Assembly (NCBI GenBank): GCA_977030845.1
Contig: OZ365112.1
Coordinates: forward strand, 20,026,001 to 20,090,000
Direction: 5' to 3'
From: Fimbriosthenelais zetlandica
Taxonomy: Eukaryota
DNA length: 64,000 nt
Under the pieces are notes generated by a model. The model was not told the origin of the DNA, made no database searches, and was given only the letters and a program-made list of their open reading frames with translations. This document shows, piece after piece, positions 17,313-49,714 of this stretch. Within the stretch, counting starts at the first letter, position 1. Each line of letters begins with the position of its first letter. A program made the translations under genes and the position numbers.

Positions 17313-17917
17313 TGGAGGTCCGCTAACCGGAAGTTCTGTTAGGAAAACAGTTCTGACTTCCGCCATCACAAAGAGCTGTCAAAAACAAAGATTATCACGT
17401 CAGTTGACCCCAGAAAACCCATTGATCGTGTTTTTGTCATAAGGATCTGTAAGTATTTACTACATTCACATCGTTGGCGAAGCAATGTTCTTTCTATCTG
17501 CAATTCTGAGTATCTTTATTCAAAAGGATATTCGCAAAATTTAGAATATCTAATCTGATCATTGTCTGAACTTCAGTCTGACTCTGACAAGCAAGGCAAA
17601 GGCTACTGAATCAACCATCTGATTATTCCTCTAAATGTATTTATATTAGTTTAAGCTGATCCTAGAGGCCTATGTAAATAGGTCAAGTCAATAAACTGCA
17701 AAGTGTGTGTAAGGGTTGTGGGTTGAGAGGCGGGTATGACTATGCCTACGCGTATCTCCCTCTGCACTAGTAGGCTAGTAGTCTATATACTTAGTAGATA
17801 GTATACTATCCTTGGTAGTACGCACAGAAGTAGAGAGACTACTTCTATGGTAGTACGGTAGTAGATCTCCTGCAGTGCAGAGTATCCATCTCCTTGGGCT
17901 TGGTAGCCTATACCTAT

Positions 17918-19596
17918 TTATTATACCCCTCCTACTGACAGCCCATAGGAATAACATTGGTGATCTGTAGGCCACGACCCGTGGCCTAACAATATCTGTA
18001 GGCCACGGGTTCTGTAGGCCACGGGTTGTAAATAGTTCCGGTTTGTAAGGCGGTGCTCCACAGCCTTACAGCCTCGAAGCCACTGACTGAATTTTTGAAA
18101 TTCTGAAATACCAACCTTTAATTTAGGAAAATCCGTGTAAAACGGTGTTTATAAGTCTCTCAGAGCCATTATCGTGCACTCTTCCGCTTTTTGGGCCACG
18201 GCATGACAGGAAAACAACGTCACTTGCGCCATGACAACGTCGTAGGTCATGGCGTTGTCATGGCGCATGTGACGTTGTTTTCCTATCATACCGTGGCCCA
18301 AAAGTAATTTCAAGCTTCGATTACACAATATTTAATTAATAATTTTAATCTATTAAACTTTTATATAACCTATCTGTTTATAATTAAGACTAATTACCAA
18401 TAATAAAGCGAAATTGGGTAGAGATATCTGGAACTATTTTCCAACGATGCATGAGACATGATAAGTTGAAGAGAATTTAGCCCGGCCTCCAGAGAGTTTC
18501 GGGAGTGAAAGAAGCTAAAAAATTAGCTCAGATTATCAAAATAAAATATTTGTGTATGTTTTCATAAATCTTTTATGGACTTGTTAATTTATAAGGGGTA
18601 TAATAAATACAAAACATCCCGGGAAAACATAAGCGGGGCTGTAGGCACCCTCGGTCCCGTCGGACTGATTTCCCTCGACTTCGTCTCGGGAAATCAATCC
18701 GCCGGGACCTCGGGGCCTACCGCCCCGCTTATGTTTTCCCGGGATGTTTTGTGTTATTATTATACCCCTCCTACTGACAGCCCATAGGAATAACATTGAT
18801 GATCTGTATGCCACTACCCGTGGCCTAACAATATCTGTAGGCCACGGGTTCTGTAGGCCACGGGTTGTAAATAGTTCCGGTTAGTGAGGCGGTGCTCCAC
18901 AGCCTTACAGCCTCGAAGCCACTGACTGAATTTTTGAAATTGTGAAATACCAACCTTTAATTTAGGAAAAGCCGTGTTTATAAGTCTCTCTGAGCCATTC
19001 TCGTGCACTCTTCCGCTTAGTTTTATTACTTTTGTGCCACGGCATGACAGGAAAACAACGTCACTTGCGCCATGACAACGTCGTAGGTCATGGCGTTGTC
19101 ATGGCGCATGTGACGTTGTTTTCCTGTCATACCGTGGCCCAAAAGTAATTTGAAGCTTTGATTACACAATATTTAATTAATAATTTTAATCTATTAAACT
19201 TTTATATAACCTATCTGTTTATAATTAAGGCTAATTAAATATAATAAAGCGAAATAGGGTAGAAATATCTTGAACTATTTTCCAACGATGCATGAGACAT
19301 GCTGAGCGGAAGAGAATTTACCCCGGCCTCCAGAGAGTTTCGGGAGTGAAGGAAGCTAAAAAATTAGCTCAGATTATCAAAATAAAATATTTGTGTATGT
19401 TTTCATTAATATTTTATAGACTTGTTAATTTATAAGGGGTATAATAAATACAAAACATCCCGGGAAAACATAAGCGGGGTGGAAGGCACCCTCGGTCCCG
19501 TCGGACCGATTTCCCTCGACTTCGTCTCGGGAAATCAATCCGCCGGGACCTCGGGGCCTACCGCCCCGCTTATGTTTTCCCGGGATGTTTTGTGTT
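17918..19596. mobile_element. Head-to-tail tandem duplication (2 x ~839 bp) of a palindrome-rich non-autonomous element
   Basis: Units 17918..18756 and 18757..19596 are highly similar. Each has TTATTATACCCCT...AGGGGTATAATAA inverted motifs, an internal ~115-bp palindrome (18188..18304; 19032..19144) and a second large palindrome (18594..18769; 19435..19596). No coding capacity. Confidence 0.8.
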
Positions 19597-19643
19597 AATA
19601 GTTGGCTAGTACTCCAGTATAGTGCAGAGCCAGCGGGAGATAG

Positions 19644-19673
19644 CCCCCCCCCCCCCCCCCCCCCCCCCCCCCC
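19644..19673. repeat. Poly-C tract (30 nt; G30 on the minus strand)
   Basis: Direct observation. A second C20 run lies at 14910..14929. Confidence 0.9.
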
Positions 19674-19965
19674 ACCTCCTCGCTCTGCACTGCCACTGGC
19701 CAATGTCCTGAGACTGAACCTGTGTGTTGGGGATGATGTTGGTGTCTAGGCCCAAAGATACTAATAAATTATATTAGTATCTTTGCTAGGCCTATAGGCC
19801 TAATTTAATATAATTTAATATATTTAATTTAATATAGGCTAATATGGCATAGGGATAGGCCTAACTCCAGTTGGCATGATTGACGGGGTTTGGGGGGCGT
19901 GGTGCCCGATCACCATTGCATGTTAATTAAGCTCGAACCCTTGGTTTTCTTCTGTTGTTCAGAAC

Positions 19966-34678: not shown

Positions 34679-37600
34679 CTACTTGGGAAGGTTACAGATT
34701 TCACAGCTTGTGTTTTGGTAAGAGTTGAGAAAGGTGCAGTGAGCACAGGTCCACATAGCAGATGCTCCTCCACTCCCTCCTCCGATAGGGGGAAGTGGGG
34801 ACGCGTTTGGTCCTACAAACGAGGTCTGTCGAGAAGTGGGGGGAGATGGGGCTGAAAATTAAATGGCAATGAAAAGTTTGAATTTTTAATGTTTAAATCC
34901 GGTATAGATAAGAGCAAAGACATTAACAAGTTTAGTTCTAAACTCTGATATCAAATTAAAAAGGGATCATGTGTACTTACAGTTGGCTGACATGAGTTGT
35001 TGCACTGTTCCCCATTCCTCAGTTTTGGACCAGTGGTGGGCCAGTTCTTCATCTTTGGCTTTCACTGCCGCCAGTAAACCACTCATATGATCCTGTCAAA
35101 TAGGAGCGGAACTCAGTAAATTAATGATGAATCCATCATACCTTTAACAATGCTTCCACAAATATATAGCCTGGATATAGCTTTATATTTTAGGTAATAT
35201 ATATTTCCATCCTCTAATATCTAAAATTATAGGAAAGAATATAGTGGTCTTACTCACCCTGAGTGGTAGCATATCACAGGTGTACATGTACAATAGGACA
35301 TGGAAATCAGACAAGGCTCGAAGGAAGTCTTTGGGCTCAAACTGTGCCATGTAGGATGTGAAGGCATTAAAGTCTGTGGCTTCTCCAATCTCAGCCCTGT
35401 TCTCCACTGAGAAGGGCTTGTGACCATTACCGGCAAAGAAGGTGAACTCAGGCTCAACAGGGAAAGCCGCTGGCAGGTCTACCAAAAGGTACTCCACCGG
35501 CAAGGGCCGAGATAATTGTGTCACCTCGTTACCATACTGGTCCTTCTCCTGTAAATGATAGGTATCCCATAATATAAAAGGCTGGTCATATTCATTATGT
35601 AGTTGGCAATCTGGGACATGATAATCATAGAGAACATTACCTTATGATAGACTGAGACTAGAATTCAAATGGCAGAATGTTTGTGATGGTTGTACCCACC
35701 TTGTAGAAGACATCAGGAACATATTGCTCTTCACTAGACTCTTTGATGTAGCCTAACTCAGGAGCATCCTTAGTAGGAATCAAGCAGTCATCACACACCA
35801 AAGCCATACACTGGTTAGACACTTGGTATCCTTCAAAGTGGATCTGGTTGTCCTTGTCACCTAGAAACAGTCATAAATTTATTTTATTAAAATTTTAGGC
35901 TTTGCTCTGACAAAAAATAAGGATGCAGAATGGCTAAAATATAGGTAAGCTTAGAAGAGAGTAATAAGTTGATCTCTTACCTGTGACTACCACGGTAACA
36001 AACTTGGATCCAAAATGTCTCTCTGGTGAAAGTTTACATGGGTTAGGATGTTGGTTTTGGAAATCAGCAGCCATGATACACTCTTCTGCACTGAGAAAAT
36101 GAGAATTCTGCAAAGAAAAATATTCAATATAAATATTCAACTTTGAAATGACAAATGATAATAGTTGAATGACCTCACTAAAGTTATAAAATATTCGCAT
36201 CTGCCCCACAAAGTGCTCTCCCTATCTGGTACTTACAATGTTGCCTCTAAAGTGTTTAACGGTTCCTTTTGATAGATCTTCAGCTATAAGGTCGGTGAAT
36301 ATCCATCCAACTATACTAAGACCTAACTCAGACGCTACACAGTTCACTGCTTCCTTCTTCTCATCCTCCACTAGCTCCACTGAGTTACGTGTACTGGCCT
36401 GAGAAATAAGAGATAATACACATTACTTCCAGTAATTTTAAACAAATTATTTTGATCAGCAAAATGAATATTTTAATAATTAAAATTACCTGTGTTGGCT
36501 CGTATATGGCAGTGACTACAGCCTTGATACCCAGTGGTGAGCCATCGTGAGGCTCATAGCGACCATAGAGTAAACCAATCCGCTGTAAGCCAGTGTTTCT
36601 CCAGTAGTTGAGGAATCTCTCCACTATAAAGGGATTCTCAAACTGGATATAATCTACGTGGCGGTATGTCTGTGTAAGAGACAAATATCATCACATTCAA
36701 TTATAATAGACAAAATCAAATGGCATATTTCAAATATAATATCACATAATAGGATTAGAAATGAAATCATGAACTCTAATCAAAAGACTAATCGTTCAGC
36801 TATCTGTCAAGGCTGAGGTTAGGAGGTAAGAGTCTATTACCTGTCTGTTGAGGGTGATGGCTGAAGGCTGACATTTAGTACAGATCCCCCCTGGCCAAGG
36901 TGGGTGCTCTGTACAGCCGGGTTTGATCTTACAACTCAGGTTCTCTAGGCTCACAAACTTACCCCTGTGGCAAGACATGGACAAAATTCATTTACAAATA
37001 CTTTAATCATTCAGCAGCTGTATTCTGATTATTAACCTTTGTTGCATCATTTTTAATTCTTTGATTGGTGGAAGTAATTAATTGAAACTATTCTATAAGA
37101 GCAGAAATACATAGGTCCAGGTCATCTGGCACTTACTTGTCGACACCGCTGTGTAGTTTTCGCAGATAAGAATGAAAGGAAAGGAATTTGATGGGTGGGT
37201 CCCTGCTTTTTAAATACTCTTCGTCATACGGCTGTAAGTATTGAAAGAAATACATTTTATTAATCAAAGACTCAACACATTACAGAGCTAGAAAATTCCT
37301 AAAATATCCAAAAATAAAATAATGGATCATAAACAAAAGAGGGTTTAAAATCTGACCTCCAGTGGGACGCAATTGAAGCATTTTCCTGAGGGACCATGAC
37401 GGCACCTAAGTAGAAAAATGTATGTTCATATTGTAATGAAATTATTCAGTCAATAAGTCAAATATATGCTGAGGTAAAAGTGTGTATGCTAGTTTTGAAA
37501 TTAAGTTTGGCAGCTTACATCAGTTCATTGCGACTCCTCTGTATGCGGCCATCCTGCTTCCAGAGGTACTGATCCACCTCATCCTCCCTGATTACCAGAC

Positions 37601-39004
37601 CGTTACTACTGATACTGAAGCTGCCCAGACTACTGCCTGACGGCGACGGTCCACTACTAGAAGGGGTACTATCAGACACCTCCATGTTGGTACCTTGATG
37701 GTGATCCAAGTACACCATATCTCCATGTCTGTAATTAAATTAAACAAAGTGCAAAATTCAATCTTTTTTGTCAAGTCTCAGTTTTCTCTGTATAAAAGAC
37801 AATTGATATTTTAAAAGGGGGACATTGGATTTATTTAGAAAATCTGACTTACCTGATTTTATACGAGGCCAGTGTTTTAACCCTGGATGTTATGAACTCT
37901 TCAGACTTATTGCGATTTTTGAACAGCTTCCATCCTAGATCCCCAAGGTCAAACTCCCTTTGAACCTTCAATGAAATGTAATGTTATTCAATAACCAAAG
38001 GTATCAAATGGACGCAAATGCAGGATTACACAGAATATTGTAGTATATTTTGAGACTAAAAATGCTTTGCTTACCTTGTCTAGGAATTCATTGATCCTCT
38101 CAGTCGCCTTTGTCTGAATCCTTTTTGTGCCATCTGGGGACTGAACCCGAACAATCTGTAAGAACAAAATTTAGGCTTTACAAATGTTTAGCTAGAATCT
38201 AGCCTTAAGTTTTCGTTAATATCCAACAGATCAAGACTTTTAGTCAATTTAGACTGGTGCCGTCATAATTTTGATGTTTATTTGAATAAGCTGTAATAGT
38301 ATTGTGGTTATCTATAATGTGGGTATATTCTACCACGATGATCAGATACCATTTATTACCACGGATTCATAAGTAACCTATCACCATTCAGTACCAAAAA
38401 TAATTTGTGAAATGGTTATAATCAATGATCAGGGCATTCAAGTAATAGGGTAGGCTAGTAGTAGATGGCCATGTCATACTATGTGTATTTGACCAATGGC
38501 CTTTCAACGGCAAGAAATCATAGGTTCATAGAATATAACAATTTTATTAGACATGTCCTTAAATAATTATTGTTAAATAGATACAATATTAGTTATTAGT
38601 AATATTACTCCTCGTGTCGCAATCATAACAAAACATGATTTGCAGAAGTTGCCAGAACTTCAAGCCTTCAAGGGACAGCCTGTAAAAGAAGGCTGAGATA
38701 GGAGTAAAAATTCTGTTAAATTTCAATCAAAGAATTCTATAATCATCCGATAATCAGGCTTTTTCCTGATTTGTCCAATCCATTCAGTAAAGTTGCATTA
38801 CAAATCGAGAGGCAGCCCCTGAAAACAGCTGATTCACGTTCTCCCTCCATCAGTCAATACACCACTAGCCATTTGTACTGCAGACCCGAGTCACACAGAT
38901 GTCAAAATGACTCCAATTCATTTGTGGGGGATTTCTTTACACCGATCTTAGGTTTGTGGGAAGAGAACAATGTGAGATTTACGTACCATGGTGTTAGACA
39001 TCAT
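34679..39004 (-). CDS. NPLOC4: Nuclear protein localization protein 4 homolog (p97/VCP-UFD1 cofactor)
   Basis: Starts MMSNTM|[13 protein letters not shown]. Contains [68 protein letters not shown] and RPLPVEYLL, and a C-terminal NZF finger [24 protein letters not shown] with TAG at 34679-34681. Confidence 0.96.
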
Positions 39005-39109
39005 CAGTCAATGTATATGGGTCTTTTTCATGAAAAAACCTCCAATATATCAAGCTCACTTTCTATCTGACGTCTACTTCCGATGCCGACTTGCCATCCA
39101 GATCTCGTT

Positions 39110-39300
39110 CTGACGAGAAAATAACAAATTTTACGTCTATAGATTTAATGTTCAAAAATAGGTTTGTCGCATTTATTTTGTGATATTCCATTAAAATAAA
39201 GAGAAAAACGTGTTCAAGACTAAATGTTAATTGCAATTTAAAATAATTATTTTGTTTTAATCCGACAGTATCACGTGATCAAACACATTTCCAAGATGGC
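39110..39300. promoter_or_regulatory. Bidirectional promoter between NPLOC4 (-) and the uncharacterised gene (+)
   Basis: Head-to-head arrangement, palindromic E-box ATCACGTGAT near 39270 and a YY1-type CAAGATGGCGG at 39292 over the ATG. Confidence 0.55.
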
Positions 39301-42300
39301 GGACATTGCTGTAAACATTGCGAGGGCGCTGCTACATGATCAAGGTTTTTATAGATTTCATTTATCCTTTGGATGATTTGTAATCGTAAACAGTAAGAAA
39401 ATTCGAATGTCAATTGTAATATCTCAAATTATAATTCTTTCTCTTGATGTATTGCACTTTGTTGGCCAAAATAATGGCCGGTGTCATGCGGCTCGACTCA
39501 CGCCAGCCACGTGCATGAACCGGCAGGTGGCGGTAGTGCCTATGGTACTACTCTCTGGGTGCTGCCACCTGCCAGATTATGCCCCTGGCTTCACTCGAGT
39601 CATGTGTAGTTGAGCCCCAGGCCGCTAGGCTCCAGTCGTTCCTCCATATGGAGGTATGGAGGAACGACTTGAGCGCTACTGTGCGGAGTGTGGTAGGCTG
39701 TATAACCGGCTTGTAACCTAGTACATGTAGATATATAAAGCCTATAAAGGGGCACAGAACTGAGTAAATTATCAAAAATAATTGTCTCGTCTACATTTTC
39801 TACATGAATTTGCATTATAATATACTCTTGCCTATAGCTATGCATTCCATTTTCCAACATATTAAAATAAAGTTTACAGTTTGAGTCAAATTACCCCTAC
39901 TAGTAGTAGTACATCCAAGGTACCTACCACCCAAGCGAAAAGGCTAACTTTTTTTTGTCTCCAAGAGGTAAAACAAATTTTGTAGATTTTAGGAGCTCTT
40001 CAAGTACCAAGTAATCTGGTTTAGTCTCATCAGAAATTAAAGATAATAAAGATAAAAGTTTTCTTGTTCCTATATATCCATCTCATAATAAATACTCTAG
40101 ACTGTAGATTTATGCCGTGTTTTATTTAGTTAAATTTCCCATTTGTTACTTGCAGTGATATTGACCAGGCCGCCGAGTGGGAAAACTGATCGCAATAGAA
40201 TCATCAACAACTACACCCGTCAGTTAACATCAGTCGCTGCTAAGAACATTGGGTCAAGCTCTGCTAAAAAGAGCAAGCCTCCTCCACCTACCAGTAATAT
40301 GAAACTTTTCATTAAATTGGATGAATCTAGCCGCGGGTCTCGCACAGATTTTCCCAACAATACGAAAAATACTTTAAATCATAGGCCTACATCTAACAGT
40401 CCAAATGCTGTTCCCCATAGACGGACTCAAAGTGCCAGAGAAAGGCTGCCCCCTAGGAATTCAAGTGCACATAAAAAACGCCCTGTGCAAAGCGCGAAAG
40501 TGACATGGGGAAAAAATCAAACCAAACACAGTTCAAATATTTATAGTTCAAATATAAATTATGATCGGCCTGGCGCTAGATCCCACTCATTGGAGAACTG
40601 TGCTTTGAAGTATAAGAATAAATTTGGCTCAAAATGGGTGAGTGAACCTGACTTGTCAATGACTGGAAAACCCTTGAAGTCGTGTCTCAAGAACAGTTCA
40701 AAACTCAGTGTAAATGACCTCACTGATGAAGCATTGGGAGTTGTTATAGATGATGAGGATTCTGACAGTGAACATTCAGACTCAGACTCGGAGGAATCTG
40801 CTTTGTGAGTATAACTATATTTTCTTTGATTCATTTTTCGGGGACAAGAAATATTCAAGCTCTTTGCTGATTCTGAAGCCATGCCAGTGTTTTAAAATTA
40901 ATTTCTTTGTTTCAGGCCTCTGCCTAAATCATTGCGTCCTCTCGCCAGCTACTGGACGCCTGATATTCCTCCACAGTACCTGGGCATCGACCATCTACAT
41001 TGTTGGGTTTTTCTTCCCTCTATGGTCATGGATTACCGTGAATTGCCTGTAGTCCCGTCAAAAGTAACCGATCCTACAGAGGACCTTCCTTACCAAGAGA
41101 AAATAGTGGAAACTCGTAAATTGGTAAGTGTCCTAGCCAAAAACGTGTCCTTGTATTCAGTTCTAGTTTAGTTTCTAATAATAACTATGTGTTTATTATC
41201 TAACATCTTAAATTATCAGAGGCTGGCCGATGTATTATGTACCGTACACATGTATTATTTAGGCAAATGCAAGAAAAAGATGTTGAAATGTATTAAGCTC
41301 ATTGTTTATTGATACAGAAAAAGAGGGTACTCGATAGCAGGTCTTGTCATCACGCCAGTGACTCCAGTAAAACTTCTGTTCCTCCGCTTCAAGTCTATAA
41401 TCCTGATGGGCGGTTAATTCATGAGTAAGTATTAAAAAAGATATTCATAACACTCATAATGTTTGGACAACAGAATTAAGTATGCAGAAATGTATCGTTG
41501 AGATAATGCCTATAGTATTAATGGACACAGTATAACATATTTTATTTCTATTTTTACAGAACCTCAAGGCAAGTTCGGACATTAGGGGTGATAAGAAGAG
41601 AAATAGAAGAATTGGAGTTACTGATGAAGGGTATAGGAACAGCAGGAGGGTGCTCTATAGTTGTACAATATCAGTATGAAATCAATAAACTACAAGATAT
41701 GGTCAACAACACATTGGGCAGAGTGGAGGAAATAGAAAGGTGAGGAGTCAGAAAACTAACAGTGGAATCGAAAGTAAATTAATGTGATAGCATATAAATG
41801 GATCTGATATTTGATTGTGCATGCGTTTGTTATAAATTAAAAGTTTTGAAAATTAAATAGTTTTAAAAAATTCAAATTTTATTTTCAGGAGGGAACGTGA
41901 ACGACTAAACGCTTTAGAAGCAAAGCAACAAGATTATGTAAGTTACCTCTCCATTGTTTTATCCTAAGTTAAGTTCTATATTTCTGTTCAAATAGCCTTA
42001 AGCAGCCTCGTAAAATAGCATTAAGCCGTAAAATAGTCTTAAGTTTTCATTTTCAGTGAATTGTACTTTAGTTTACGATACCAAAATGTGTACAAATATA
42101 TCGCTTACCGAAACGTTTCGTGACGACAGTTTATATTTTACATTGTTCTAGTGCGGTTTGCGGAAGTTCTACAGAGAACATGATGATGTTGTACGTCAAA
42201 TACGATTGCAACATTCCAAATGCGTTCGGGAATTAGCGTTGCTGGAGCGAGACCTCAAAATAGACTCTTCGCGAGCGCACTTCAGGAAAGTGGAGACCGA

Positions 42301-47200: not shown

Positions 47201-49714
47201 ATATTCCCTGAAAGGGATTTTGAAATGCACAGCAGGAGGGTGGTGATTTTAACAGGACTAAGCATTTACAAGATGAAAAACCTTTTGACTAAACTGCTTA
47301 CAATTTGTGAATCAGCTGCCCCAGCTGAAAAAAATCAAACCTTTGCTTAAATCAAAATGTCCTCCTCGTCTGTCAAAAAAATCAGGACATTTTTTTCTTT
47401 ACATCTTTAGACAAGATCCATATTATCACAATATGTATGGAAAACAAATTACTGAACATTTCTAGGCTGCTACAGTTTGTCAGGAAAAGGTTAATGTGTG
47501 ATGGATCCAGAGGCTGCGTGGGCGTGCAAGACTCGCCAAGCGCATTGTGCTATGCATGCTAATGTACTATGGGAGGCCGGATCTATATAGCTCTATTGAG
47601 TGTCCGAATAACTATTGTTGAAATGAAAATCAAAGAATGCCATTACAATTGGATTCATGTATTTTTAGGTCTCTGGCATATAACACAATTTTGGGGAAAT
47701 GGAATGGGGAAAATCTGGCCGGTTTTATTCTGTTTTATAGCATGAAGGGTCATGGATAAGTCTTTGTCCGTGTAATGGGGCCATCCTCCCCGACGGAAAA
47801 TATGTTATATGATATCCATTACAGGTGTGTACAGGTGAACCTAGGCCTATATATTAAACCCCATGGTCATGTATATAATATAAAGTGGACGTAGTTCACC
47901 CAAAATGAATTCAGATTTCACATTAAGAGGTTTTCTTTTCTCTTTATTGTAGGCATTCTCATTTGCCAATAAAGTCTACGAATTCGTATGTTGTCAGAAA
48001 GGATGTCAGGACCTATGTGATTGTTGCTTGCCACCTAAAAAACCAAAGTTAAAGAAAACAGACATCAAACATCTTGTACATCAACCAGCCTCCTACATTG
48101 GCGATAATTTCCCGAGCCCCACGTTCTCAGGAGCTGAAACATGCAGTTCGTTCAGTGGAAGGGAACGTCTTGATTCAGATAGGAGTTCCACTGCTTCTAC
48201 GACATCTAGAAAGGAATCCTTCTCTTCAGGGGCTGACTTCCGGAAGTCTACTGCAACACCTATTATTGACATGAAGCCAATTGAATTCTGGGCAGCCACC
48301 AACCGCGAGACTGTACAGCCGCGGACACCAAAAAGAATCCGTCTTCAAAGTGAAACAGAACTGAGCTTAGACAATTTTAATATGGATCTTTATGAAGTTG
48401 AAGAGAAGTCCGATGAATCTTTAACGGATGAGGAAAAGTTGACACGGTATAAACTGGGACAAGTCCACTTCAGTTTACAGTATGAAATCCCCACCAAATG
48501 TCTCATTGTTCGCATTATCGAAGCCCGTGATTTGCCCAGACCTCTCGCCCAAGATTCACACAAGCAAGATATGGCACACTCAAATCCTTATGCCAAAATA
48601 AATCTTCTGCCTGATCAGAAAAATTCCAAGCAAACCACCGTTCAGAGAAAAACACAGAATCCCAATTGGTCGGAGATCTTCAGGTTTGAGATGCCATTCA
48701 AAGAGGTGCAGAAGCGGACACTGGAGGTAGAAGTGAAGGATTTTGATAAATACTCCCGTCATTGTGTCATCGGACATACTCAACTGAGGTTAGATAACAT
48801 CAATCTCATCAAGGGTGGTCACATGTGGAAACCCCTCATGCCAAGTACCAAGGTTGGTTCATACATCATTTTATTCCTCTACTTATTTCATGTGAATCTT
48901 ACCTCACAGAATTTTTGGGTCACGTAGTTGCGCACAAAGGGTCCACGTTTAGAAACCTGATGGTTTTCATATTGATTGATTATTTCTGGGATTAATAGGC
49001 ATGCCTTTATTATCTTTGTATTACAGGAGAAGCCTGAGCTGGGGGAACTAATGTTATCTTTGAATTACTTGCCCACTGCCGGCCGGATCAACATCGATAT
49101 CATCAAGGCCAAGCAGCTTATCCAGACTGATCTGGTGGGAGGATCTGGTAAGGAAAACTCTACAACATTCAATGTATGGTAACCAAAATTAATTACCACC
49201 CAGTTCTAAGGACAATAGTTTATGCATACATGTACTAGGCCTACTATTTAGTCGAGATGTATGTATTTTCGGACATCGTTGCTGAAATTATTCATTTTCT
49301 CTTGGAACAATTATTGAGGACAGGACTTGTAATAAAATTCATTTATTTCTATTGCTTGCAGATCCATTTGTCAAGGTAACAATGTGTCTTGACCAAAAAC
49401 AGATAAAGACAAAGAAAACGTCAGTCAAGAAGAACACCATTGACCCTGTCTTCAATGAATCGATGACATTTAATCTGAATGGGGAGCAATTGTCTCAGAC
49501 TTCCCTGGTTGTAACTGTTTGGGACTATAACTCAAAGAGTAGGGATGATTTTGTTGGTAGAATCGTGCTGGGCAAATACTCTACTGGTCATTTGGAAACC
49601 TCCCATTGGAACAGGATGTTGCAAAGTCAGCGTACGCCAGTGGCGCAGTGGCACACATTGCGTCTGCGCAAAGAATGTGACGAGTTGTCCTCAGTGTCAC
49701 CAGTTGTTTCGTGA
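44270..49714 (+). CDS. SYT17: Synaptotagmin-17 (B/K)-like tandem C2 protein
   Basis: join(44270..44302, 47953..48852, 49027..49147, 49362..49714), in phase. N-terminal Cys cluster (VCCQKGCQDLCDCC), no transmembrane helix, and PIIDMKPIEF, SLTDEE, QDMAHSNPY, LLPDQKNSKQT, DFDKYSRHCVIG, KGGHMWK and ELMLSLNYLPTAGR as in SYT17. The first exon is inferred from phase and Kozak context. Confidence 0.9.

Follow-up and report, generated by a model that had tools for sequence, protein, structure and literature searches.

Intron 1 of a plus-strand C2-domain gene holds a GC-rich island of 236 bases whose two ends are predicted to pair and close a three-way junction. At a probability of roughly 38%, our preferred reading is that the island encodes a small RNA of its own on the minus strand, with an external promoter of type 3 (U6/7SK/H1-like) used by Pol III; the candidate could equally be a hairpin-rich repeat. 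The GC content is 0.60 across 39476-39711 and 0.59 in 39500-39699, compared to 0.31-0.37 in the flanking DNA, which bears out the description in the earlier note of a GC-rich island in an AT-rich intron. The observed/expected CpG ratio is 0.67 in the island and 0.57 in the whole window, which is the 64-kb stretch of DNA that was analysed. The island is not CpG-enriched and is no CpG island, and a CpG-island promoter was rejected on this ratio. No coding signal was found in the island, the three ORFs that cross it contain no Pfam domains, and an exact look-up of these ORFs returned no record; no homologue was found for a neighbouring 221-aa ORF. The island begins 130 nt inside the intron, downstream of exon 1, whose counterpart in the relative L001 (MEGPAVNIARALLNDKG followed by gt) has a DNA identity of 77%. 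The C2-domain exons of the host gene lie further downstream, at 48028-49714. The bidirectional promoter of NPL4 and the C2 gene is 130-415 bp from the island, and the candidate minus-strand unit is antisense to its C2-domain host, just upstream of the NPL4 promoter and co-directional with NPL4. The positions of exon 1, the island and its stems are given below.

39298-39346, plus strand: exon 1 of the host gene (MADIAVNIARALLHDQG), with a GT donor after it, conserved in the relative L001

39476-39711, no strand assigned: GC-rich island with a closed three-way-junction fold (terminal stem and two long hairpins), from GC content, shuffle z-score and copy search

39477-39482, no strand assigned: first arm of the terminal stem P1, GCCGGT on the plus strand, partner 39705-39710, pair probability 0.88-1.0

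39490-39616, no strand assigned: hairpin B, long and irregular, ~30 pairs

39622-39686, no strand assigned: hairpin A, 26 Watson-Crick pairs (4+3+4+15) interrupted by one-base bulges, loop of 6 nt

39705-39710, no strand assigned: second arm of P1, ACCGGC on the plus strand, from pair probability

The structure of the island is discrete and lies well beyond chance. On the plus strand it folds at -127.5 kcal/mol, compared to -96.3 +/- 5.1 kcal/mol for 200 dinucleotide shuffles (z -6.1), and on the minus strand it folds at -115.9 kcal/mol, compared to -84.6 +/- 4.8 kcal/mol for dinucleotide shuffles (z -6.6). No shuffle was as low as the native energy on either strand, and the exact 243-nt minus-strand transcript has a z of -7.4 against mononucleotide shuffles. 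All of the stems named in the earlier note are present, among them a perfect one of 15 bp (39634-39648/39655-39669) and one of 12 bp (39520-39531/39564-39575). Their proposed arrangement as a row of five hairpins (H1-H5) is not preferred, as imposing the local H1 raises the free energy by 14.3 kcal/mol on the plus strand and by 9.5 kcal/mol on the minus strand. What had been offered as an alternative, the pairing of the 5′ and 3′ ends (39477-39482 with 39705-39710), dominates on both strands with a pair probability of 0.88-1.0, and the competing local pairing of 39477-39482 with 39519-39524 has a probability of 0. In our folding models, the favoured fold is a closed three-way junction, in which a 6-7-bp terminal stem surrounds two long hairpins with almost purely Watson-Crick pairing. 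The perfect 15-bp stem forms the core of hairpin A, and a tandem 8-mer (TATGGAGG twice, 39647-39662) occupies its loop and 3′ arm. Hairpin B is composed of the stems GGCTC/GAGCC, GACTC/GAGTC, AGCCA/TGGCT and GCAT/ATGC together with the 12-bp stem, and has an apical mini-hairpin at 39533-39551.

The minus strand carries strings resembling Pol III type-3 signals on both sides of this structure, and a minus-strand type-3 unit appears to be the better-supported of the RNA readings in the earlier note. These features, numbered from the candidate start at G39710, are as follows.

39808-39815, minus strand: perfect octamer ATGCAAAT, candidate distal element, -105 to -98

39749-39767, minus strand: position expected for the proximal sequence element (PSE), reading TTACTCAGTTCTGTGCCCC, putative and taken from sequence alone, -57 to -39

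39732-39739, minus strand: candidate Pol III type-3 TATA box, TTTATATA, -29 to -22 from G39710

39468-39471, minus strand: T4 run, candidate Pol III terminator, 6 nt past the last P1 base

The TATA (39739 to 39732) and the T4 (39471 to 39468) are where they had been reported on the minus strand, and the likeness to a Pol III type-3 unit seen there holds, with the TATA ending at -22, the T4 lying 6 nt past the stem and the octamer now added. G39710, placed relative to the TATA, is the candidate first transcribed base on the minus strand, and the TATA ends 22 nt ahead of the first base of the terminal stem. The predicted RNA from 39710 to 39468 is 243 nt long, its first terminator T is position 240 (239 nt from G39710), and no T4 interrupts it ahead of 39471. 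A type-3 unit has its TATA 21-30 nt upstream of the start and at least four T at its 3′ end with none internal; here the TATA spans -29 to -22, and the only such T run closes the 3′ end. Across the window, TATAWAW falls in the -36 to -24 slot at 1.7% of positions, a T4 falls in its slot at 9.3%, and an octamer falls within -300 to -60 at 1.1%, with only three octamers in 64 kb in either orientation. The joint occurrence of TATA, T4 and octamer is found at ~1e-4 of window positions (~1 in 10,000), a frequency that applies to promoter features sought post hoc. The promoter and terminator strings lie outside the palindromic part, at canonical distances from the stem ends. A generic scan (TATA, 26-35 nt, a GC-rich T4-free stretch, T4) also catches the hairpin repeats at 18614-18737 and 19455-19578, indicating that such strings are not rare beside hairpins in this window.

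If the island is a Pol III gene, the octamer at -105 and the proximal element (~ -57 to -39) would recruit an initiation complex of the snRNA type, with TTTATATA (-29 to -22) providing Pol III specificity. Transcription would start at or near G39710 and stop in the T4 at 39471-39468, yielding an RNA of ~243 nt. In the predicted 243-nt RNA, the first and last six paired bases close the three-way junction, which leaves a short single-stranded tail with a U4 end. The 3′ U-tract beside the terminal stem may be bound by La or a La-related protein, and the two rigid, nearly perfect helices may be the protein-binding arms of a stable RNP or, alternatively, substrates of double-strand-specific nucleases.

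This organisation is like that of the U6, 7SK, RNase P (H1), RNase MRP, Y and vault genes in having a TATA ~22-29 nt upstream, an octamer and a T4, and it is like type-3 Pol III genes in its predicted transcript of a few hundred nt with paired 5′ and 3′ ends, a 3′ U-tail and no internal T4. However, the predicted RNA has no sequence or structure match to the RNAs of these genes, and the PSE is a putative one read from the DNA letters only. A type-3 gene would share its PSE with the U6/7SK genes of its genome; the window and the related loci contain no U6, 7SK, RNase P or MRP gene. The human H1 promoter is compact, with an octamer-to-TATA spacing of ~100 bp, and the spacing of ~100 bp at the island resembles it. 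Adenovirus VA and EBV EBER RNAs are GC-rich and highly paired, with a 5′/3′ terminal stem, a 3′ oligo-U and helices for dsRNA-binding proteins; they are viral, ~160-170 nt long and expressed from internal A/B-box promoters. The predicted RNA shares their GC-richness, terminal stem, oligo-U tail and long helices, but the candidate promoter here is external, no viral genes are nearby, and a 20-mer from the island has no exact match in IMG/VR. For animal RNase P RNA genes a TATA box 21-27 nt upstream is a typical signal, and those of molluscs and annelids carry the typical Pol III signals PSE, TATA and 3′ T4-5 (PMC4287351). The spacing of the signals at the island agrees with that in the mollusc and annelid genes, the PSE here being putative. 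In insects and crustaceans, RNase P RNA is intron-embedded, sense to its host and without Pol III signals (PMC4287351). The island is likewise a structure closed by a terminal stem inside the intron of a Pol II gene, but differs in having candidate Pol III signals on the antisense strand and in lacking the conserved regions of RNase P.

No Rfam family matched at the gathering score in the whole window, and at E<=10 the island (601- and 256-base queries) returned only hairpin-shaped junk, miRNA models, RT-6 and THF-II; the Infernal comparison with Rfam proposed in the earlier note yielded no family. No tRNA was found in the window with ARAGORN. In a motif scan of both strands, RNase P/MRP, 7SK, snoRNA boxes, hammerhead, Sm site and telomere template were absent or meaningless, in agreement with the earlier report that hallmarks of 7SK, RNase P, RNase MRP, telomerase RNA and hammerhead are missing. 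An H/ACA RNA consists of a hairpin, a single-stranded ANANNA hinge, a second hairpin and an ACA placed exactly 3 nt before the 3′ end. The H/ACA sno/scaRNA hinted at in the earlier note was rejected, because AGAUUA (39574-39579) falls within hairpin B with three of its six bases paired with 39513-39518 (39577-39582 pair with 39513-39518 in the plus-strand fold) instead of forming a single-stranded hinge. The remaining ANANNA matches are confined to the A-rich 5′ flank before the island, the terminal stem ends 12 nt before the single ACA (39723), a closed junction stands in place of two tandem hairpins, and no sno/scaRNA model appeared at E<=10. A C/D snoRNA was rejected as RUGAUGA and CUGA are absent from both strands and no sno model appeared at E<=10. 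The regions CR-I (GNAANNUCNGNG) and CR-V (ACNNNANNNNGNNUA) of RNase P RNA, described by Piccinelli et al. in 2005, reportedly form P4. RNase P RNA was rejected, with CR-I absent even at one mismatch, CR-V matched solely by a string that carries one mismatch and sits at the wrong end of the minus strand, and no RNaseP_nuc match.

The template of telomerase RNA spans ~1.5 telomere repeats. Telomerase RNA was rejected as neither strand contains a permutation of CCCUAA, a test limited to a CCCUAA-type repeat; the only telomere-repeat-like string, UAACCUA (39714-39720, plus strand), lies outside the folded unit. A hammerhead or other self-cleaving ribozyme (retrozyme circRNA) was rejected in the same way, with CUGANGA absent from both strands and no ribozyme family at E<=10. 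All 7SK RNAs, those of lophotrochozoans included, have two base-paired GAUC motifs in the 5′ hairpin (PMC2995076); GAUC is absent from both strands of the island, and the 7SK and arthropod 7SK models gave no match at E<=10. RNase MRP RNA is recognised by mCR-I, mCR-V and GARAR in loop 8 (PMC4287351); the minus strand does contain GAGAG, but a GAAAGUCC-type CR-I, a CR-V and an RNase_MRP match at E<=10 are all missing. An SRP/Alu-like or 5S-like origin shows resemblance at the word level only and no Rfam signal, a parvovirus-type Y-shaped terminal hairpin would have different arm proportions and viral genes are absent, and a structured alternative 5′ leader of NPL4 has no usable splice donor. 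By these comparisons the RNA, if made, is outside every described family.

It is quite possible, though short of probable, that the island is a lone copy, or a remnant, of a non-coding hairpin-rich repeat of the MITE/foldback type inserted in the intron. The terminal stem would then be a short TIR, the hairpins would be DNA palindromes, and the TATA, T4 and octamer would be chance strings in AT-rich DNA. Consistently, over-folding in the 64 kb peaks not at the island but at a tandem repeat (17900-19700) made of long GC-rich near-perfect palindromes. The core helices of the island are nearly all Watson-Crick and therefore strand-symmetric, and in the minus-strand fold G-U accounts for only 3 of the 82 pairs and the stems of 15 bp and 12 bp contain no mismatch, which resembles a recently formed DNA palindrome more than a long-established RNA gene. 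In addition, the tandem 8-mer duplication in hairpin A looks fresh, a length of 236 bp is typical of MITEs, and the non-coding palindromic GC-rich core in AT-rich surroundings is shared with MITE and foldback repeats, as is absence from the corresponding site in L001. Related contigs L001-L005 were reached through an NPL4 exon, and only L001 (exons ~80% identical) extends into the orthologous intron; L002 (Logan run ERR14368249), the nearest of the relatives at 83-87% exon identity, ends 2.5 kb short of the site, and the NPL4 UBL exon as an orthologue probe gave no candidates. The comparison of orthologous introns proposed in the earlier note came out negative, as the first 1.6 kb of the L001 intron, the sole readable one, is without the island. 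Unrelated repeats are found there, among them a different palindromic repeat (poly-G/poly-C), and L001 keeps the promoter blocks of the bidirectional promoter but not the island. In L005, nothing comparable was found up to 6 kb upstream of NPL4.

Several observations argue against such a repeat. No second copy was found in the 64-kb window (19-22-mers with 3 mismatches; blastn-short and nhmmer on the masked window), no look-alike was found in 91 kb of the five related loci (blastn-short, nhmmer), and the island has no similarity to the other repeats of the window. Exact searches with a single 20- or 21-mer each gave 0 matches in IMG/VR and in prokaryote genomes. In JGI metagenomes one 21-mer gave 0 matches and one 20-mer matched inside a protein-coding region with flanks unlike the island, a coding context and dissimilarity that mark the match as chance. 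The flanks, ...AAATAAT and TGTAACC..., show no target-site duplication, and the terminal complementarity is just 6-7 bp (GCCGGT/ACCGGC). The structure is branched, with a three-way junction that a simple foldback does not have, and the three type-3 promoter and terminator strings stand at the right distances (~1e-4).

A plus-strand RNA derived from intron 1 of the C2 gene, made by Pol II and either trimmed to a protein-protected terminal stem in the manner of insect RNase P RNA and snoRNAs or diced from the long hairpins like a miRNA, is improbable. The island does lie in an intron in sense orientation, 130 nt past the conserved exon 1, and structured RNAs embedded in introns without Pol III signals have a precedent in insect RNase P RNA (PMC4287351). 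The plus strand is also richer in G and U and its free energy is lower by 11.6 kcal/mol, and the G-U asymmetry toward this strand claimed in the earlier note is present (16 G-U pairs in the plus fold against 3 in the minus fold). However, once composition is controlled the z-scores show no preference for the plus strand (-6.1 versus -6.6). The portion of hairpin B at 39505-39590, with ~30 pairs, has the size of a pre-miRNA, and the only Rfam near-matches are miRNA hairpin models at E 0.7-8, which score 13-18 bits compared to cut-offs of 77-168. In a canonical miRNA precursor, a stem of ~33-35 bp is flanked at its base by single strands and capped by a loop of 10 nt or more. The hairpins of the island are closed into the junction, without the single-stranded flanks needed by Drosha, and the loop of hairpin A is 6 nt. 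The C/D and H/ACA boxes are not in usable positions, AGAUUA being partly paired in hairpin B, and the orthologous intron of L001 is without the island in its first 1.6 kb.

A role at the level of DNA, or none at all, is quite improbable; the stretch would be a cluster of palindromic binding sites (CACGTG, CAGGTG/CACCTG, CATATG) or cruciform-prone DNA immediately past a bidirectional promoter, or else a neutral product of local template switching. The bidirectional promoter of NPL4 and the C2 gene is 130-415 bp away and the stems contain E-box palindromes, with CATATG at the apex of hairpin A and CAGGTG/CACCTG in the arms of the 12-bp stem. However, the nested perfect inverted repeats of 15 bp and 12 bp inside a terminal stem are unlike site clusters, there is no CpG enrichment, and L001 lacks the stretch although its promoter blocks are conserved.

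If the island is a lone hairpin repeat, a TATA plus a T4 around GC-rich hairpins would arise easily in an AT-rich, palindrome-rich genome, which would be a warning against calling such contexts genes without RNA evidence. Under the Pol III reading, a further step, which we regard as doubtful, is that the island represents the founding member of an undescribed family of ~240-nt three-way-junction Pol III type-3 RNAs in a lophotrochozoan-like animal, acting as an RNP scaffold or a small-RNA precursor. To our knowledge, animal type-3 Pol III RNAs number only a handful, all of them central to important particles, and discoveries beyond vertebrates and insects are rare. If true, the finding would add a new abundant RNP scaffold beside the 7SK, Y and vault RNAs, or else a precursor made by Pol III whose two near-perfect helices are cut into small RNAs, and a 243-nt RNA present once, outside any family and equipped with the full set of external Pol III signals, would be a cheap and well-defined target.

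The GC-rich island proposed in the earlier note occupies 39476-39711, with sharp edges and a GC content of 0.59-0.60 against 0.31-0.37 in either flank (0.375 window-wide). Its CpG observed/expected ratio, 0.67 compared with 0.57 for the window, marks it as GC-rich but not as a CpG island. Both strands fold more stably than their shuffled counterparts, at -127.5 kcal/mol against -96.3 +/- 5.1 for the plus strand (z -6.1) and -115.9 against -84.6 +/- 4.8 for the minus strand (z -6.6), with 0 of 200 shuffles as low in either case. Each of the stems described previously is found in the sequence, but their arrangement as a chain of five hairpins (H1-H5) is not preferred, as forcing the local H1 costs 14.3 kcal/mol on the plus strand and 9.5 on the minus strand. 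Instead, 39477-39482 is predicted on either strand to form a 6-bp helix with 39705-39710 (pair probability 0.88-1.0). Because this distal pairing, the terminal stem P1, is favoured over H1, the predicted fold is a closed three-way junction. The element is real, discrete and strongly structured, and its family is unassigned. Its arms and the minus-strand signals around it, numbered from G39710 (the first base of P1 on that strand and candidate transcription start), are listed below.

Features of the element and its minus-strand flanks
39622-39686, hairpin A, 26 Watson-Crick pairs, 15 of them in one perfect stem
39647-39662, tandem 8-mer TATGGAGG x2, which makes up the hairpin A loop and a portion of its 3' arm
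39490-39616, hairpin B, with a perfect 12-bp stem
-29 to -22, minus strand, TTTATATA (TATA)
39471-39468, minus strand, T4 (U4 in the RNA), separated by CAUUA from 39477, the last P1 base
-105 to -98, minus strand, perfect octamer ATGCAAAT in sense orientation (the window has just two other octamers)

Across the entire 64 kb, no Rfam family reached its gathering score, and searches of 601 or 256 bases at E<=10 returned only hairpin-shaped chance matches (13-18 bits against cut-offs of 41-168). No tRNA was found, and Pfam gave no signal on ORFs crossing the element. On both strands, RNase P RNA is rejected for its missing CR-I (the sole CR-V string, on the minus strand, carries one mismatch and is at the wrong end), RNase MRP RNA for its missing MRP CR-I, C/D snoRNA for its missing boxes, and the hammerhead for its missing core; a telomerase RNA template of CCCUAA type is absent too. 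The paired GAUC motifs that are a constant mark of 7SK, lophotrochozoans included (PMC2995076), are likewise missing from both strands. The H/ACA-type RNA suggested earlier fails on architecture, with AGAUUA largely paired within hairpin B and the ACA 12 nt past the terminal stem.

The minus-strand TATA and T4 that the earlier note had seen are present and spaced as in Pol III type-3 (external-promoter) genes. As there is no internal T4, the predicted transcript is 243 nt. In Y, vault, RNase P and MRP RNAs the two ends pair and a short U-tail is left over, and the predicted transcript likewise has paired ends and a short U-tail. Over every window position on both strands, the slots are filled by a TATA in 1.7%, a T4 in 9.3% and an octamer in 1.1% of cases, and by all three jointly at ~1e-4 of positions. 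RNase P RNA genes of molluscs, annelids and other non-insect animals typically carry a proximal sequence element, a TATA 21-27 nt upstream and a T4-5 (PMC4287351), and the spacings of the candidate signals here equal theirs. A second TATA-like string at 39740-39750, 2 nt from TTTATATA, overlaps on both strands (TATAAAG on the plus strand, CTTTATAG on the minus strand).

That the element is instead a lone hairpin repeat is a serious, if tentative, alternative. Its helices are nearly all Watson-Crick (3 of 82 pairs are G-U in the minus-strand fold), which counts against a gene, and hairpin repeats are frequent here. At 17900-19700, a non-coding unit built from long near-perfect GC-rich palindromes (e.g. 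19444-19599 and 19025-19149) occurs twice in tandem with a period of about 840 bp, its copies being 92-97% identical, and about 38 nt of poly-C come next (19646-19684). No other part of the window is as over-folded (residual z as low as -8.7), and a generic scan for a TATA, a GC-rich T4-free stretch and a T4 flags this repeat as well. However, no second copy of the element occurs in about 155 kb (window and related loci), target-site duplication is absent, terminal complementarity is only 6-7 bp, there is no similarity to repeats seen in the window, and none of the three promoter/terminator strings, all canonically spaced, falls within the palindromic part.

Related species were compared through contigs found via an NPL4 exon. 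One of these, L001, with an exon identity of about 80%, extends through the orthologous exon 1 and 1.6 kb into intron 1; the element has no counterpart there, and other repeats are found instead, among them a poly-G/poly-C palindrome. Nothing comparable lies upstream of NPL4 in L005, and the contig of the closest relative ends before the orthologous region. Pol III genes move, so this absence is weak evidence against a gene. The L001 palindromic repeat (600-1300, in intron 1 of the plus-strand orthologue) is GC-rich, contains long poly-G/poly-C runs as well as inverted ATGACGTCAT motifs, reaches -112 kcal/mol per 250 nt when folded, and has no sequence relationship with the element. Within an NPL4 intron, L003 2088-7063 and L005 12018-16993 share a block of four long same-strand ORFs (194, 479, 437 and 483 aa; no Pfam match on record), which is probably an inserted mobile element.

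A plus-strand first exon at 39298-39346 (17 codons, M..AVNIARALL.., then a GT donor) is conserved in L001 in its protein sequence and, with 77% identity, in its DNA; a CACGTG box and CCAAGATGG directly upstream are conserved as well. Another block, 39067-39130, is conserved too, and an apparent bidirectional promoter (39130-39346; L001 1626-1916) lies between NPL4 on the minus strand and a C2-domain gene on the plus strand. We infer that the 17-codon exon is exon 1 of this gene, whose C2-domain exons lie downstream (48028-49714), which would place the element 130 nt inside intron 1. With respect to NPL4, whose exons at 35183-38167 match Pfam NPL4 and zf-NPL4, the element lies upstream, a few hundred bases from the promoter. 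Just downstream of the element, a low-complexity, Ser/Lys/Pro-rich ORF (40143-40808, plus strand, 221 aa) matched no homologue at E<=0.001 among 5.8 billion proteins and contains no Pfam domain; it may be exon 2 of the C2-domain gene.

Processing of a plus-strand RNA from this intron is unlikely. The plus-strand fold is 11.6 kcal/mol more stable and has more G-U pairs (16 of 90 against 3 of 82), which also weighs against the minus-strand gene, but after correction for composition the z-scores favour neither strand. A role at the DNA level, or neutrality, is improbable too.

We consider the element a candidate minus-strand Pol III type-3 small-RNA gene, with a probability of 0.38, an estimate held to about 0.4 by its absence from the stretches of related genomes compared, its near-pure Watson-Crick helices and the abundance of hairpin repeats here. 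Transcription of such a gene would start at or near G39710, or a few bases further upstream if the second TATA-like string is used.
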